Shown: one piece after another, positions 5,003 to 61,400 of the stretch
Position numbering within the stretch: the stretch's first letter is position 1
Layout: the number at the start of each line of letters is the position of its first letter
Assembly: GCA_965649765.1 (NCBI GenBank)
Contig: OZ287759.1
Coordinates: 10,912,001 to 10,976,000, forward strand
Length of the DNA: 64,000 nt
From: Bispira polyomma
Taxonomy: Eukaryota
Reading direction: 5' to 3'
Made by a program: the position numbers and the translations under genes
Notes under the pieces: generated by a model
What the model was told of the DNA's origin: nothing
The model's input: the letters and a program-made list of their open reading frames with translations, nothing else
Database searches by the model: none

Positions 5003-6143
5003 CTTAATCTAATCTAGTCATACTTTTATAGCGCTTAATCTTTGTACAACAAATTCTAAGGTGCAACAAACCCAAAACGTTAATCGAAACGTTAATCGAA
5101 AATCAAAAAGTGGGCGGATGGAATTCGTAACCAGGGAGACTACCGTAAATGGTTGCGACGGCTAAGGTGGAAAAGCCTGTTCAAAAAGATAGGCCTTCAG
5201 CTTACTCCTGAAAGAGGAGAAAGTTTGAGCCAGGCGAACATGATCAGGTAGGCTGTTCCAAATGAGGGGGCCATCATGAGCTAGGCAGTGATTGAACTGA
5301 ACTTTGGATTTGTGGATGTGAGGGTCGAAAGTGGGAATGTTAAGGTATAATTTATCAGGGTTACTGCGCCTTGTCCTGACTGAGCATGTATATTTGGATA
5401 GATGGGGGGCTAAAATAAGTGGGTAATCCAGAATTTAGAAATTTATATATTATTGTTGCTGTTTTGAAAGCAACACGATATTTTATTGGGAGCCAGTGCA
5501 GTGACTTGAGTATAGGAGTAATGTGGGAAAATTTAGAAGTTTTGGTCACAATACGTGCCAACGAGTGTTGGATATTTTGAAGGCGTCTGAGATCACTACG
5601 AGATAAGGAACGGAACAAAGAGTTGCAGTAATCAAGCCTGCTGCTGACCAAAGCATTGGCAACAGTGACTGCAGTGGATTTGGAAAGATAGTGTCGAATC
5701 CGCCTGAAATCACGGAGGCCAACAAAACATGATCTACACACCGCTGCGACATGGTTTGAGAAGGAGAATTCAGAGTCAAACACCACACCCAGGTTTCGTA
5801 CTTTGTCAGCTGGAGAAAACCTGCTGCCAAGAATGTCAAGTGGAAAACAACAGGACAATTTTTCCCGTTGCGACTTGGAGCCAAACAAAATAAACTCAGT
5901 CTTCTCAGGGTTCAGCTTGAGTTTATTTGCTGCCATCCAGTGTTGTACATCAACAAGGCAGTTCTATAAGGAAGTGAAAGCTGCCTTGGCAGAGTCAGGT
6001 GTAAGGTGGATATACAGTTGGGTATCATCAGCATAGAAGTGAAAGTTTATGTTTTTGTATGCAGCAATAATCTTGCTGAGTGGAGTGGTGTACATGGAAA
6101 ACAAAATGGAACCCAGGATGGAACCTTGGGGAACACCAAATTT
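5003..6143 (-). mobile_element. 5'-truncated L2/CR1-clade LINE (RT C-terminal half plus 3' UTR with (ATTAG)n tail)
   Basis: Minus strand encodes [61 protein letters not shown]. Ends in a short tandem tail (ctaatctaatct on +). Confidence 0.92.
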
Positions 6144-55400: not shown

Positions 55401-58400
55401 ATGCCTGGCATCAATTATTACGTGCATTAAAAATACATATTGATTATAGCAATGTAAAAATTGCTGGATGTAAAAGGTTTGACATGCATCACACAAAGTG
55501 ACAGTAAGTTGTGCTATATATAGAATATATTGAGGAAAACAAGTGTGTGGACATGCAATAGAGGTGCTGTACATTATATGAATGTAATACAATACGGTTA
55601 TATATATAACTTAAAAACTAGACTATTAAAACTTTGTAAAAAGAACACCTCTGAATGAGAATATATGTAAACAGAGTATCAATTAGCTTAAAATGGCAGG
55701 TGACCATTAATGGTTTATCCATCGTACACTCATACTAAGCTCATACTTAAGGAATAAAAGGGGGTGTAAGGACATAATTACACCAGTAAGAGGGGAATAT
55801 AATTCATATATATTGGTTTATGCCAATAGGGTGAATGGAAGGGACATTCCAGATGTATTTTAATTCCTTTCTTCTGTGAATGGATGTGCTATCAGGAATG
55901 TTTGGATTTCCCAACCATTCTATTACACTGAATTCCATATCATTATGGGTATGTTTTTTCTGGGTAAAATGTTTGGCAACTGGGGTACTGTTGTTTTCTC
56001 TTGGTTTCTGAACACTATGTTTGTGTTCATATATTCTTGACCTAAAAGCCCTACTAGTTTCTCCAATATACTGTAATCCACATTTTCTACAATTTATGAG
56101 ATAGATAATGTTGGAGATTTCACAAGTGTAATGGTTTTTGCGTGGGATATTTACACATTTATGTGTAACTCCAGTGTGGTGGCTTATAAAAGTATTAATT
56201 TTATGGAGTAAAGGACAATAGGTACATTTGCCTAATCTGGTACAGATTTTTGGTCTGTCCTCAGATTGTTTAGTATCAAGTGGGGGATACCGTACTGTTG
56301 AGGGAGATAACAAATCTCTAAGGTTGTGCAATCTTTTAAATCCCAAGAATGGTGTTTCAGGAAATAAATGACTGAGATCTGTGGTATTTTGGATTATATT
56401 CCAATTATTTTTAATGAATTTCCTGATGTGTGGGTTTTGAGGGTGATAAGTAGTCACCATGACTGGTGGTGTGGTCTTTTTGGGGGAACTATCTTTTATG
56501 ATTAGTTCATTCTGTGTAAATTTGCTGGCTTTTTGATAGTGTTGTTTCAGGTATTTATACTGATATCCTCTATCTAGATAGTATTTTGTGAGTTTATGAG
56601 CATGCAGATGGAAGTCCTCATCCTTGGTACAAATTCTTCTTAGGCGAAGGTATTGTCCATAAGGGCCCTTTTTCATGACACTTTGTGGGTGTGCTGATGA
56701 ATGGTGTAGGTATAAGTGTGTGTCTGTTGGTTTGTTGTATAGGGTTGTATACACTTCCTTAGCACTAAATTATGCTAATTTATTCATGGATAAATTTGAA
56801 ACTAAAGCATTAAATAATTATCATCTACAACCTCTAATATGGAAAAGGTTTATAGATGACATATTCCTGATCTGGACTCATGGTGTGGATGCATTTATGC
56901 AATTCATGAAATACCTCAATAACATCCACCCCACCATTAAATTCACCCATGAGTATAGTGAGACCAACATCAATTTTCTGGACACCACTGTCAAAATTGA
57001 TGAAAATCGACAATTGTATACAACCCTATACAACAAACCAACAGACACACACTTATACCTACACCATTCATCAGCACACCCACAAAGTGTCATGAAAAAG
57101 GGCCCTTATGGACAATACCTTCGCCTAAGAAGAATTTGTACCAAGGATGAGGACTTCCATCTGCATGCTCATAAACTCACAAAATACTATCTAGATAGAG
57201 GATATCAGTATAAATACCTGAAACAACACTATCAAAAAGCCAGCAAATTTACACAGAATGAACTAATCATAAAAGATAGTTCCCCCAAAAAGACCACACC
57301 ACCAGTCATGGTGACTACTTATCACCCTCAAAACCCACACATCAGGAAATTCATTAAAAATAATTGGAATATAATCCAAAATACCACAGATCTCAGTCAT
57401 TTATTTCCTGAAACACCATTCTTGGGATTTAAAAGATTGCACAACCTAAGAGATTTGTTATCTCCCTCAACAGTACGGTATCCCCCACTTGATACTAAAC
57501 AATCTGAGGACAGACCAAAAATCTGTACCAGATTAGGCAAATGTACCTATTGTCCTTTACTCCATAAAATTAATACTTTTATAAGCCACCACACTGGAGT
57601 TACACATAAATGTGTAAATATCCCACGCAAAAACCATTACACTTGTGAAATCTCCAACATTATCTATCTCATAAATTGTAGAAAATGTGGATTACAGTAT
57701 ATTGGAGAAACTAGTAGGGCTTTTAGGTCAAGAATATATGAACACAAACATAGTGTTCAGAAACCAAGAGAAAACAACAGTACCCCAGTTGCCAAACATT
57801 TTACCCAGAAAAAACATACCCATAATGATATGGAATTCAGTGTAATAGAATGGTTGGGAAATCCAAACATTCCTGATAGCACATCCATTCACAGAAGAAA
57901 GGAATTAAAATACATCTGGAATGTCCCTTCCATTCACCCTATTGGCATAAACCAATATATATGAATTATATTCCCCTCTTACTGGTGTAATTATGTCCTT
58001 ACACCCCCTTTTATTCCTTATATTTATATTGGGGAAGTTCATATTATCAAGGAAACGTCGTATAGACGTGCCATGACGTCATACAATCAAACATGCGTCA
58101 CGACGTCAGCACTATGACGTCATAATGATTTATACAATAAATATACACAAAATACATTTTTGTTCAAATCTCACTTGGCAACCAGACTTTATCAGGCTGG
58201 AAACCAATTTAAAAACTTTTTCTTATCATTTTACCACTCAAATGCTGATCACATAAGATCAGAAAAATATTATACTTTTATAAATTATATTAGTACCGGA
58301 TAATATAATTATTTCGGATTATTATAATATAAAATAATAATTTAGAGTGTTATTATCAGGATTTTTTTAAATACAGTCCTCAGGATTTTACTTTTGATCA

Positions 58401-61400
58401 ACTAACTTGTTGACTTATCAGCTGTTACAGTGGACATTACATCGTGATATTCATGGATATTATCACCTATTAGCACCAGAGACCAAAGAATCCGTGAACA
58501 CAACTCATCTCTATCAAGATTCCTCTGTCTTTGATGATATTTGTGAGTCAAATTATTTGCACAAATATCGTGATAAATCCTGAATATCCACAGGAGTTAT
58601 CTTGTTTTGATCAGCTATTATCATCACATTATATTGATAACCATTCTTAACATGGAGGATAAAACCAGACAAGTCTACTATACTTGCCATCTTTGCCAGA
58701 AGACATTTTTGAGACATTATTATCTCAAACGACACATCCAAAACCAACACATGTTTAAGAGTCTAAACTGTGGTATTTGTGGGACCACCTATAAACAAAA
58801 GGAGGACCTCACCAAACACACGATCAGAAAGCACCCTATCCCCACCAGTGCCATACCAAACACAACTAGGATAGACACTATCAATCTTACTGAGGACCCA
58901 CCAGCAACTCTGATGGAATTACTGGACGAACTTGAGGCTGGCCCTCCTACCCAACAGCCAGACCAGTCAGTTGTACCCACCTCAAACATTTGTGTCCAAA
59001 CAGACACAACTATTTTGCCTTTGTTTCACAAAAAAGTGAACAATAGCACCAATACCAAATTGATCAAACATAGGGACAAAACTACCAGCACTGTACCAAA
59101 TACATGCACAATCGAAACCAACACAGAACCAATGTTGTGCTTTGACCCAGATGATATAACAAATCTCACTGATGGTCTGACTTTAGTCACATATAAAAAT
59201 TGTTTCAAAGCTTTTATGTCTACTAACAACAACAGTCTGATACAACCCACCACACCACAAGTAGTATTACCACCACCAATGGTAAATAAAGCAACCACCC
59301 CAGCCAACAATGAACTGGCTTCCACCACAAAAATCCAAAATGCCAAAAACAACAACAAAATAACGCCCAAGGCTCTATCAAAGCGTATACCTGAAATAAA
59401 TCTGTTCTCTGATCCAAATATAGGCCAGAGCAAGCCAAGAATAGCTTGGCCTACCAATTGTAAACAAACAGCCAAAAAAGAAGTACTAATGAAAACAAAA
59501 CACATCATTCAAAATTCGCCAAAACTGACCCCTAATAAAGTTCACACTAAGAACCACCTACTCAAACTATCCAAAAAATACTTCCCTATGGAACATCAAC
59601 AGATCAGAACCACACCTACCTATGCACATACCAGCACAACTGACTGGTCTAGCCTGGTGAATGAGGCATACTCCCCTACCAAACCAGCACTGACCACCAA
59701 CACTGTGATCATTGATGGGACCCATGACAAACCACTAAGCACCAGTTGGAGGAAGCAAGACCTACTGGTAAAAAAGGACAACTCCTTCATCATGAAAATG
59801 AGGGACCTTTATGGAGAGCTTTCACCCTAAGCTACCCATCTATACTCTTCAATAAGTAATCCTTTTTATTTGTATATATACATTTTTGTTTGGCATTTTT
59901 TGTATAAAAATTACATTAATTATTTTTATCTAATTTTAATAAAGTACAATTTGAGTTATTAAAATTATCTGATGCAGTAAATACTATGATACCATTATTT
60001 AAGTGATCATATGGATACCACAACTTTGAATATAAGTAAAGTTCCATTCATCAAATATGATCATGCCTTATTCTTAAAACTATCCATGTTTTACAGTATA
60101 CCATATAAATCACACCCAACCACCCTAAATCGGTAGGGGGCAATGGGTTTGAGTGAAATGCAAGTTGATATAAATGGTAACTCCCTAATCTAAGGTCAGA
60201 AGAAATCATCATATTTCTTATACACACCCTATAGCCATATATCCCAACAAAATGGACAACTACAACACTTTGCTGTCTATAAATAGCCCCTAAATGACAG
60301 GGGCAACAGGGGCAACCACCGGAGCAACCAGGGCTATAAAACATACCTTAGGAGAATAAGTTGTTTTAACATTTCAGCCTCTGATGAGATCTTCTACAGA
60401 ATAGATCGAAATATATATTGATAAAAGAAATATATATCAGGCTACATATATTATTTAGTCTACTTGTTCATACACAAGACATAAACCCTTATTTGCTTTA
60501 AGCTCATACTTAAGCAAACTTAGACACTGCACCAACCCTGTGCAGGCCATCAGAAGCAAGACACACATTACCGCATAGACTGTAGACCATCAGAAATGGT
60601 GTAGGCCATCAGAAATGGACATAAATAATAATAGAAGGAGGAGGTCGGTAGAGTGTGTGTACTCTGCCAATGTGCCACAGTGCCAAAAAAAGTGAAACTT
60701 TCTTTTCTTTTGAATATTGAATTTACAAAAATTGCCATTTTCTACTCTCTGTTACTGTGATGCATCATAGTTTTATGCTTTTATCACTGTGGTGCCACTT
60801 AATAATATGCTACTGGTAAATGTATCACAGAAGCCTCATAATTTACTTTCTTTATTACGTCAGCTACCTCCCACCAAGGGCAACAGTTAGTATAATAGTT
60901 TAAATTTAGTTGGTCATATCATGAAGGCCAGATTCAATAGTGATACAAACTTAGTGCTGAAGCCACTGAAAACCAACGACCCTACGGCAAGGACCTGACA
61001 AACTTGGTCACATGAAGAAAAGAAGGGGAGCCGAACCCACATTAGTGAGAGGCCAGTAACACATCTAAAACCACAATACCACAGCAGTCCCTGACACCAT
61101 ATATAAGAAGGGGTTACATTTTAGCCCAAAAGTCCTAGCATAGGAAACATTGTGTATGTTTGAAAACCTTCTGTCTGTTGTGATATCATAATGCAAGTTT
61201 GAAACAAGTACATATAGTAGTTACAATAAGGTATTACCCTCAAAATCAGGTTTAAAAAGATGCAAAAATCAAGTTTTATGGACCAGAATATAGTTTACGG
61301 TTGATATTTATATTAGCCACACTTTTTATAAAATATTTTGTATATTTTCAAATATTATGTAAAAGTGACACTAAACACGTCAGAAATTCCTGTAACTACA

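Follow-up and report, generated by a model that had tools for sequence, protein, structure and literature searches.

Does a Penelope-like element (PLE) that encodes both a reverse transcriptase and an endonuclease also own the zinc-finger gene that lies inside one of its insertions? This question is raised by a 64,000-nucleotide stretch of the Bispira polyomma genome (contig OZ287759.1 of assembly GCA_965649765.1, positions 10,912,001 to 10,976,000), which we call the window and whose coordinates are used below. Within it, an open reading frame (ORF) of 392 amino acids (aa) with two C2H2 fingers lies between a reverse transcriptase–endonuclease (RT-EN) ORF and a hammerhead motif. Based on the evidence given here, this ORF very probably represents a genuine, selectively maintained second gene of a Neptune/Nematis-like lineage of endonuclease-containing (EN+) PLEs. 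It is neither a nested insertion nor recent cargo. The original prediction took EN+ PLEs to be normally single-ORF elements, in agreement with their published descriptions (PMC8557442, PMC6431247, PMC6515669). The features from which it started (a 16-bp target-site duplication (TSD), the GIY-YIG stop, the 392-aa two-finger ORF, AATAAA and the hammerhead) were all found in their places.

The segment 55752-60498 of the window is a single insertion framed by the perfect 16-bp TSD TAAGCTCATACTTAAG (55736-55751 and 60499-60514). It derives from a bipartite repeat unit of ~5.9 kb, in which module R carries the RT-EN gene, and module Z a cluster of cAMP response elements (CREs), the zinc-finger gene and the hammerhead. 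R is ~3.4 kb long and comprises a short 5′ ORF and an 840-843-aa open RT-EN frame with RVT_1 and GIY-YIG domains. The features of the insertion are as follows.

55736-55751, no strand: left copy of the TSD, identical to 60499-60514
55752-56756, minus strand: inverted, 5′-truncated arm coding for the RT C-terminus and GIY-YIG; its outer end is an R-type terminus
56757-58020, plus strand: module R, 3′ part only (RT C-terminal region, CX5CxxC linker, GIY-YIG), 5′-truncated here
57984-58020, plus strand: R-end hairpin followed by CCCTTTTATTCCTTA; insertion terminus and putative reverse-transcription start site
58021-60498, plus strand: module Z, 2478 nt, with CRE cluster, zinc-finger gene, AT-rich spacer, hammerhead and Z terminus
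58040-58125, plus strand: CRE-like cluster, candidate promoter/enhancer, with perfect TGACGTCA at 58074 and 58115 plus variants
58652-59830, plus strand: two-C2H2-finger ORF, 392 aa, uninterrupted frame
59938-59943, plus strand: AATAAA, ~110 nt past the stop of the zinc-finger ORF
60376-60443, plus strand: type I hammerhead motif with a short helix I, predicted to cleave between C60438 and A60439
60463-60498, plus strand: small Z-end hairpin and the motif CCCTT(T/A)T(A/T)TGCTT; second insertion terminus
60499-60514, no strand: right copy of the TSD, 16 bp, matching the left copy

A six-frame search of the 1.04-Gb genome with the zinc-finger ORF, in which all copy counts are lower bounds, detected at least 18 full-length copies with 97-100% amino acid identity (17 of them stop-free), along with many 5′-truncated ones. 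Linkage to the element holds genome-wide, as the full-length copies all lie in the same element context, and the copies of the element are dispersed over 13 chromosome-scale contigs. When the window element was aligned to 30 loci, every copy ended at 60490-60498 and the 5′ truncation points were scattered, with many copies running unbroken from the RT-EN ORF into the zinc-finger ORF. A common 3′ end combined with scattered 5′ truncation is what target-primed reverse transcription of a single RNA leaves behind. A nested, independent insertion with a TSD of its own was rejected: module Z (58021-60498) is flanked only by the 3-nt TAT, giving no sign of such an event, and the arrangement is ancient.

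How ancient can be judged from other families. Weaker hits in the same genome, with 27-40% identity, each belong to a separate PLE family, with 46-64% RT-EN identity to that of the window (family 1). In at least five other families the homologous zinc-finger ORFs sit between RT-EN and the hammerhead or, in tandems, upstream of RT-EN. The order RT-EN, two-finger ORF, hammerhead is kept in the loci L036, L038, L039, L041, L042 and L064/L065 (L numbers denote loci). Their zinc-finger proteins share not only the fingers but also a block of ~100 aa, DK.TNTEPLI.L.PDE...L..GL.IAT...F..T.NS.

A word-index protein search with the whole zinc-finger ORF found nothing. Relatives came to light in an exhaustive search of 1.84 billion representative proteins with a profile of the non-finger block alone, which matched 67 clusters at E≤1e-3, 42 of them at E≤1e-10. 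The matching clusters that were looked up correspond to unnamed ORFs from three unrelated European Nucleotide Archive (ENA) assemblies, and all seven loci taken from these assemblies display RT-EN, then the zinc-finger ORF, then the hammerhead. For the DNA flanking one of these loci, no match exists in the present genome, where only the RT-EN of the locus matches (64-72% nucleotide identity); therefore, at least one other species carries the lineage. In an RT-EN tree, the four elements whose zinc-finger proteins have a CxRKPTRP-type tail form a clade with 100/99 support (eight taxa, a small sample), which indicates co-inheritance of the two genes.

The picture is less uniform in families with 62-64% RT-EN identity. 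No zinc-finger ORF or hammerhead was found in the 3.5 kb downstream of six RT-EN copies from these families; upstream of the same copies, one or both are present in five of six. As in family 1, the full-length RT-EN copies terminate at the R terminus. L063 (C9:29722600-29726800; ~62-63% RT-EN identity) has a hammerhead upstream and no recognizable zinc-finger ORF, and L062 (C9:43577000-43581200; ~62-63%) has neither upstream. These may be families without the gene or merely truncated copies.

The same data bear on the idea that the ORF is a fragment of a host C2H2 gene, captured or transduced and carried passively with no role for the element. PLEs can mobilize host genes, as in Adineta vaga, where such genes are framed by Penelope terminal repeats (PMC3846280), and C2H2 fingers are the commonest DNA-binding domain of animals. 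However, all inspected genomic homologs are in PLE context, and no host-gene paralog of the ORF occurs among the sampled hits of the genome search. Cargo, which the original prediction had kept as an alternative, also fails to account for an ORF that is contiguous with RT-EN in many copies, whose position and motif architecture are kept across deeply diverged families and another species, and whose subtype tracks RT-EN. Since, in addition, third codon positions are saturated while first and second positions are conserved, we consider passive host cargo very improbable. A capture may have taken place anciently, at the origin of the lineage; this would concern where the gene came from and not its present status.

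The codon-position signal comes from comparison with an older subfamily copy, L068. Over aa 6-97, identity at first, second and third positions is 0.83, 0.89 and 0.47, and over 177 aligned codons dN is 0.195 with dS saturated, giving a dN/dS of ~0.1. Within family 1, changes counted against the column-majority reference of the aligned ORF copies comprise 38 synonymous and 62 non-synonymous ones, compared with ~22:78 expected, or a Nei-Gojobori dN/dS of ~0.46. Both ratios differ from the value of ~1 that the original prediction had proposed as evidence against a functional gene. Indels tell the same story: one in-frame event in 21 kb of ORF versus 21 events in 12 kb of adjacent non-coding sequence (a 660-nt stretch of the same copies).

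Could the open frame nonetheless be a chance product of an A/C-rich, T/G-poor strand that is never translated? The strand skew across 58500-60000 is strong, the tail of the predicted protein is of low complexity, and an antisense ORF of 160 aa (59026-59508, minus strand), contained in the zinc-finger ORF, is also open, in all near-identical copies. Against this stand the codon-position pattern, the exclusion of indels and 67 homologous clusters with conserved motifs outside the fingers, and a chance frame is hardly conceivable. The antisense ORF itself is most likely a by-product of the skew, which leaves few stop-forming triplets, and no gene.

The ends of the copies bear on how the gene is mobilized with RT-EN. 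Beyond 60498, the sequence is unique DNA in 17 loci; in 12 loci, the 5′ end of R follows directly and identically, with the first ATG of the next R unit ~17 nt past the Z terminus. The Z-end motif occurs 146 times in the genome. The last 23 nt of R occur 120 times, of which 64 run into Z and ~56 abut unique DNA. A stem-loop with a 7-bp stem marks the R end at 57984-58005 (it was flagged by a bacterial promoter/terminator scan). At both termini (58020 and 60498), a small hairpin is followed by CCCTTTTAT(T/G)C(C/T)TT, a combination that may be recognized when reverse transcription begins. A weaker pairing of this kind, TTAT.C.CTT, was seen at both module ends of L036 (L036:2800-2835 and 5195-5230), from a family with 63% RT-EN identity.

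The R terminus (the equivalent of 58020) is where each of the 14 full-length RT-EN copies stops, and none continues into Z; in seven of them, Z lies directly upstream, either 5′-truncated or nearly complete. Because it precedes RT-EN in tandem and partial-tandem copies, and full-length RT-EN copies end before it, the zinc-finger gene is as much a 5′ as a 3′ cistron in its behavior. The R-to-Z and Z-to-R junctions are base-identical in every copy, with no filler or variable joint. Such precise recurrent junctions imply that the templates were longer-than-module RNAs transcribed from tandem or partial-tandem copies.

TSDs were read around three kinds of insertion: Z-R (L002/L043, ~55 bp; L015/L044, 13 bp; L007/L048, 12 bp), R with a short Z tail (L037, 15 bp) and R-Z (the window copy, 16 bp). 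In L037, L043, L044 and L048 the TSD follows directly after the R-end motif. Each type of insertion thus arose in a single event. The ~55-bp TSD of L002 (C9:19567344-19571519) and L043 (C9:19574080-19574200) is unusually long, the others that were read measuring 12-16 bp.

Two further features of the unit were observed. First, there is a deletion derivative in which 57794-58440 is joined to 59221-60498, with ~157 nt from the 5′ end of R in addition. Neither zinc finger is left in it, but the CRE cluster, hammerhead and both termini are retained. Long head-to-tail arrays of this derivative, in which the repeat period is 2079 bp or ~1670 bp, occur at C6:739-762 kb, C9:46.434-46.455 Mb, C13:2.184-2.204 Mb, C10:43.294-43.303 Mb and C5:18.755-18.761 Mb (loci L022, L023, L025, L027 and L030). 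Second, the N-terminal part of RT-EN occupies a separate frame or ORF of 110-268 aa that begins ~17 nt past the Z terminus (L036:5241-5900, L037:1046-1870, L063:2865-3671). In L036, this ORF is followed by a polypyrimidine tract and a TACTAAC-like branch site, which suggests a retained intron, as known for PLEs.

The modular structure lends itself to another explanation, in which Z would be a non-autonomous element apart from R: a retrozyme-like, protein-coding parasite of R that has a reverse-transcription start of its own and became joined to R only by template switching during reverse transcription. In its favor, the modules have separate termini with similar motifs; R-only insertions such as L037 exist, as do the ~56 R ends without Z; and the Z-derived deletion derivative forms tandem arrays of 2079-bp and ~1670-bp periods, while animal retrozymes are thought to derive from the pseudo-long terminal repeats (pLTRs) of PLEs (bioRxiv 10.64898/2026.07.22.740005). 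However, both junctions are base-identical in every copy. Moreover, every R-only copy examined retains 24-88 nt of Z tail at its 5′ end, which means that its template was a Z-R co-transcript. The order is also the same in other species and in families whose RT-EN identity is 46-64%, and the subtype of the zinc-finger protein agrees with the RT-EN tree. With a unit that occurs in tandem, it is partly a matter of terms whether Z is called separate. We regard an independent Z as improbable and favor a single two-gene unit.

The minimum free energy fold of the window's hammerhead is a three-way junction with helices I, II and III of 5, 5 and 9 bp. The Rfam model RF03152 (RAGATH-1 hammerhead) matches with 25.9 bits, below its gathering score of 56.3. 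The core CUGAUGA...CGAAA and a 4-5-bp helix I are invariant across the families and assemblies read. In 14 hammerheads from different families and assemblies, the arms of helix II, read directly from the sequences, vary yet remain complementary. RNAalifold run on a MAFFT alignment of five hammerheads, which was not structure-aware, gave no usable result.

We examined the 5′ ends of ten RT-EN copies that carry only a short piece of Z. In five loci (L069, in both inverted arms, L073, L078, L070 and L071) the 5′ end is exactly at the equivalent of A60439, and the remaining ends are at 60411, 60456, 60475 or further into Z. The best explanation for this pile-up, which coincides with the 5′ end predicted for the cleavage product, is that a Z-R co-transcript cleaves itself in vivo and that its 3′ part is then reverse-transcribed to the end. 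The copy ends thereby suggest that, in vivo, hammerhead cleavage detaches the RT-EN template from the zinc-finger cistron. At the 5′ end of full-length R copies we also observed pairs of very short Z tails inverted head to head, with arms of ~60-90 nt (L069, C2:2818440-2818750; L070; L071; L077). In some of these pairs the cleavage nucleotide of the hammerhead is the exact meeting point of the two arms, which are 0-1 nt apart.

The other conserved non-coding element of Z is the CRE cluster. Perfect TGACGTCA sites number four in the 64-kb window, compared with 0.42 expected, and two of the four fall within 58040-58125. Perfect CREs are found at the same relative place in L036 (three sites), L038, L041, L051, L052 and the inverted arm of L064, six further loci that stem from four or five other families. 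Such conservation points to a promoter or enhancer of the unit.

What kind of protein does the gene encode? The ORF measures 392 aa from the first ATG and 407 aa from an upstream TTG. Two CX2CX12HX4H fingers with exact C2H2 spacing occupy aa 10-33 and 38-61, and the homologs from L038 and L042 match the Pfam zf-C2H2 domain (PF00096) with 38.9 and 29.2 bits (cutoff 25.2). AlphaFold2 folds both fingers as beta-beta-alpha units with a predicted local distance difference test (pLDDT) score >90. It places confident helices outside them at aa 85-95, 300-318, 332-340 and 377-387, and the remainder is disordered. After the fingers come an acidic helix (aa 85-95), the conserved core block (aa ~130-205) and C-terminal motifs (aa ~297-392).

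Full-length relatives of 395-442 aa have five features in common with the window protein, the fingers among them. Conserved outside the fingers are the acidic IPPDFF.LLE.LE helix, the core block and a KL.KL.KKY.P helix, followed toward the C-terminus by a DW.SL....YSP..P motif and a terminal F..KL.DLFG..SP. The long low-complexity tail described earlier does exist, but it holds several short motifs conserved across species. Since full-length relatives share them, the tail is better described as a disordered region studded with conserved short motifs. Downstream of the ORF, clusters of AATAAA recur 3′ of the zinc-finger gene in L049 and L050; amid AT-rich surroundings, they are weak evidence for a polyadenylation signal.

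These elements can be combined into a tentative scheme. Transcription from the CRE-rich stretch would produce a co-transcript containing, in order, the zinc-finger cistron, the hammerhead and RT-EN. Self-cleavage by the hammerhead, or polyadenylation at AATAAA, would then release a capped zinc-finger mRNA. The remaining RT-EN RNA, with a 60-nt leader, would be translated and reverse-transcribed from the R terminus. Uncleaved or read-through RNAs would give rise to Z-R and R-Z insertions, the window copy included. The zinc-finger protein, for its part, would act in trans for the element as an adaptor that binds nucleic acid, either DNA or RNA. Such a trans-acting adaptor, working through its fingers, acidic helix and docking motifs, is the most likely general function to be read from the protein.

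More specific assignments are less secure. Our preferred role for the protein, held tentatively, is that of a transcriptional regulator of the element's own CRE-rich promoter. A cofactor of the ribonucleoprotein, resembling ORF1 proteins, ranks second and is somewhat doubtful, and the third-ranked role, a counter-silencing factor, is quite unlikely. A role in choosing the integration site was considered as well and judged unlikely because the five TSDs read, from 12 to ~55 bp, share no motif. We also entertain a fuller version of the preferred role, in which the protein would regulate the CRE-rich pLTR in trans together with host CREB/ATF, in the manner of Tax, and the hammerhead would serve as a cistron separator that yields a capped regulator mRNA and an uncapped RT-EN template. 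This combination is rather doubtful as it stands. If true, it would supply a concrete function for PLE hammerheads and the first trans-acting regulatory gene of PLEs.

Several observations weigh against a maintained second gene or against parts of the scheme built on it. R-only copies and the finger-less deletion derivative have both spread, from which it follows that an element can do without the zinc-finger gene in cis. Because L068 is degenerate past aa 192, strong selection is documented for the N-terminal half of the protein only, and the within-family dN/dS is only ~0.46. The window ORF itself scores 19.9 bits against zf-C2H2, below the 25.2 cutoff, and AlphaFold2 is confident only for the fingers and the four short helices, with a mean pLDDT of 59.9. 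Sequencing runs that contain the sequence behave as genomic DNA: depth tracks copy number and the joint of the deletion derivative is present. Copies starting at A60439 could possibly reflect stalling of the reverse transcriptase at the folded ribozyme, an explanation that is less exact than cleavage. Finally, full-text literature searches turned up no EN+ PLE reported to have a C2H2 accessory gene; Repbase and Dfam were outside this search, and the family may already be catalogued there.

The assignment to EN+ PLEs follows from the RT-EN gene and from the form of the insertions. In the window, the truncated ORF matches Pfam GIY-YIG with 24 bits (cutoff 22.6), and the 840-aa ORF of L037 matches RVT_1 with 32.2 bits (cutoff 29.6) and GIY-YIG with 20.7 bits. 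The DKG motif is readable in the RT-EN translation, as is, in the window ORF, a CX5CxxC linker (C-TRLGK-C-TY-C) upstream of GIY-YIG. The ORF of the window has its stop at 57964 and is followed by a 56-nt tail; the tail between the hammerhead and the end of the insertion is 55 nt. The inverted arm is an exact reverse complement of 57012-58020 (1009 nt, 100%), and the arms overlap the TSD by 4 nt. Its minus-strand ORF (55804-56754) encodes the same RT/GIY-YIG protein as the plus-strand copy. Arms that end at the R terminus recur in L032, L010, L028 and L024.

Overall, RT together with a C-terminal GIY-YIG in one ORF, pLTR and inverted 5′-truncated insertions with TSDs, and a pLTR hammerhead are all present, as in EN+ PLEs. 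The canonical single-ORF organization is absent, as there is a second conserved ORF; this is a point of difference and no ground for exclusion from PLEs. The presence of the endonuclease and the dispersal over 13 contigs separate the element from EN-minus Athena/Terminons. The original prediction had called it a two-gene Neptune-type family with an accessory DNA-binding protein. The two-gene part is supported. The Neptune label comes from a single motif, the CX2-5CxxC linker upstream of GIY-YIG, which is common to the Neptune and Nematis clades (PMC8557442), and the element can be described as Neptune/Nematis-like.

To EN+ PLEs, which are described as single-ORF elements, the lineage adds an accessory gene that is conserved across species, encodes a DNA-binding domain and is preceded by a conserved candidate promoter. 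Preserved in its genomic copies are two discrete putative starts of reverse transcription, as well as 5′ ends exactly at the predicted ribozyme cleavage site. The binding target of the accessory protein, hammerhead processing of the bicistronic precursor and the choice of start site by a PLE reverse transcriptase are now testable. There is also a consequence for annotation: public protein collections list the zinc-finger ORFs without a name, and an annotator could take them for zinc-finger genes of the host.

How does this unit compare with known systems? It shares with canonical Neptune/Nematis EN+ PLEs (Arkhipova 2006; Craig et al. 2021, PMC8557442) RT together with a C-terminal GIY-YIG in one ORF, the CX2-5CxxC linker, the pLTR with inverted 5′-truncated insertions, variable TSDs, an inter-ORF hammerhead and probable retained 5′ intron(s). 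In contrast to them, the inter-ORF (pLTR) region here is 2.5 kb long and contains a conserved gene with a CRE cluster in front of it, and two alternative insertion termini divide the unit into modules.

Extra ORFs have been reported in the EN-minus Athena/Terminons (PMC6431247) and in an algal Chlamys element with a CCHC-knuckle ORF (PMC8557442). The latter, Chlamys-2_cBra, is also a PLE with an additional zinc-binding ORF upstream of the RT/EN ORF and a hammerhead (its own being 3′). However, compared by description, it has a gag-like CCHC knuckle and not C2H2 fingers, belongs to a green-algal PLE clade and has an N-terminal EN in a permuted EN-RT order (PMC8557442). The Athena/Terminons of bdelloid rotifers likewise belong to the PLE clade and possess accessory ORFs and hammerhead motifs, but they lack GIY-YIG, are telomere-associated and giant (tens of kb), and carry other ORFs (PMC6431247).

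Published PLE biology includes transcription of tandem copies, a pLTR promoter and reverse transcription from defined internal sites beside a stem-loop (PMC11167929), along with inverted 5′-truncated copies and partial tandems (PMC8557442). The two termini, the tandem transcripts and the internal starts proposed here would fit this biology. The closest parallel is the Poseidon element PAc of Anolis (Frangieh et al. 2024, PMC11167929), which has multi-unit tandem transcripts, defined internal reverse-transcription starts by a stem-loop near the pLTR–ORF junction and a hammerhead near the ORF start. PAc differs in having one ORF and two adjacent start sites (the 30-40-nt 'tail'). In that study, the only biochemical one of a PLE hammerhead, cleavage was unneeded for insertion in vitro and no RNA-seq ends were found at the hammerhead site (PMC11167929); in the present unit, by contrast, there are DNA copies that begin precisely there. 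Non-LTR retrozymes (PMC7229834; bioRxiv 10.64898/2026.07.22.740005) resemble the finger-less Z derivative in forming head-to-tail arrays with a hammerhead in each unit; the units described here, known from DNA arrays, are larger (~1.7-2.1 kb) and keep ORF remnants. What is unusual in the present unit is the pair of putative start sites 2.5 kb apart with a gene between them.

A functional parallel exists outside PLEs. Hepatitis delta virus-like ribozymes of the R2 and L1Tc elements free the retroelement RNA from an upstream co-transcript and thereby define its 5′ end. Those ribozymes are of another class, and the upstream RNA is host rRNA or a neighboring transcript, whereas in the unit described here it would be a gene encoded by the element itself.

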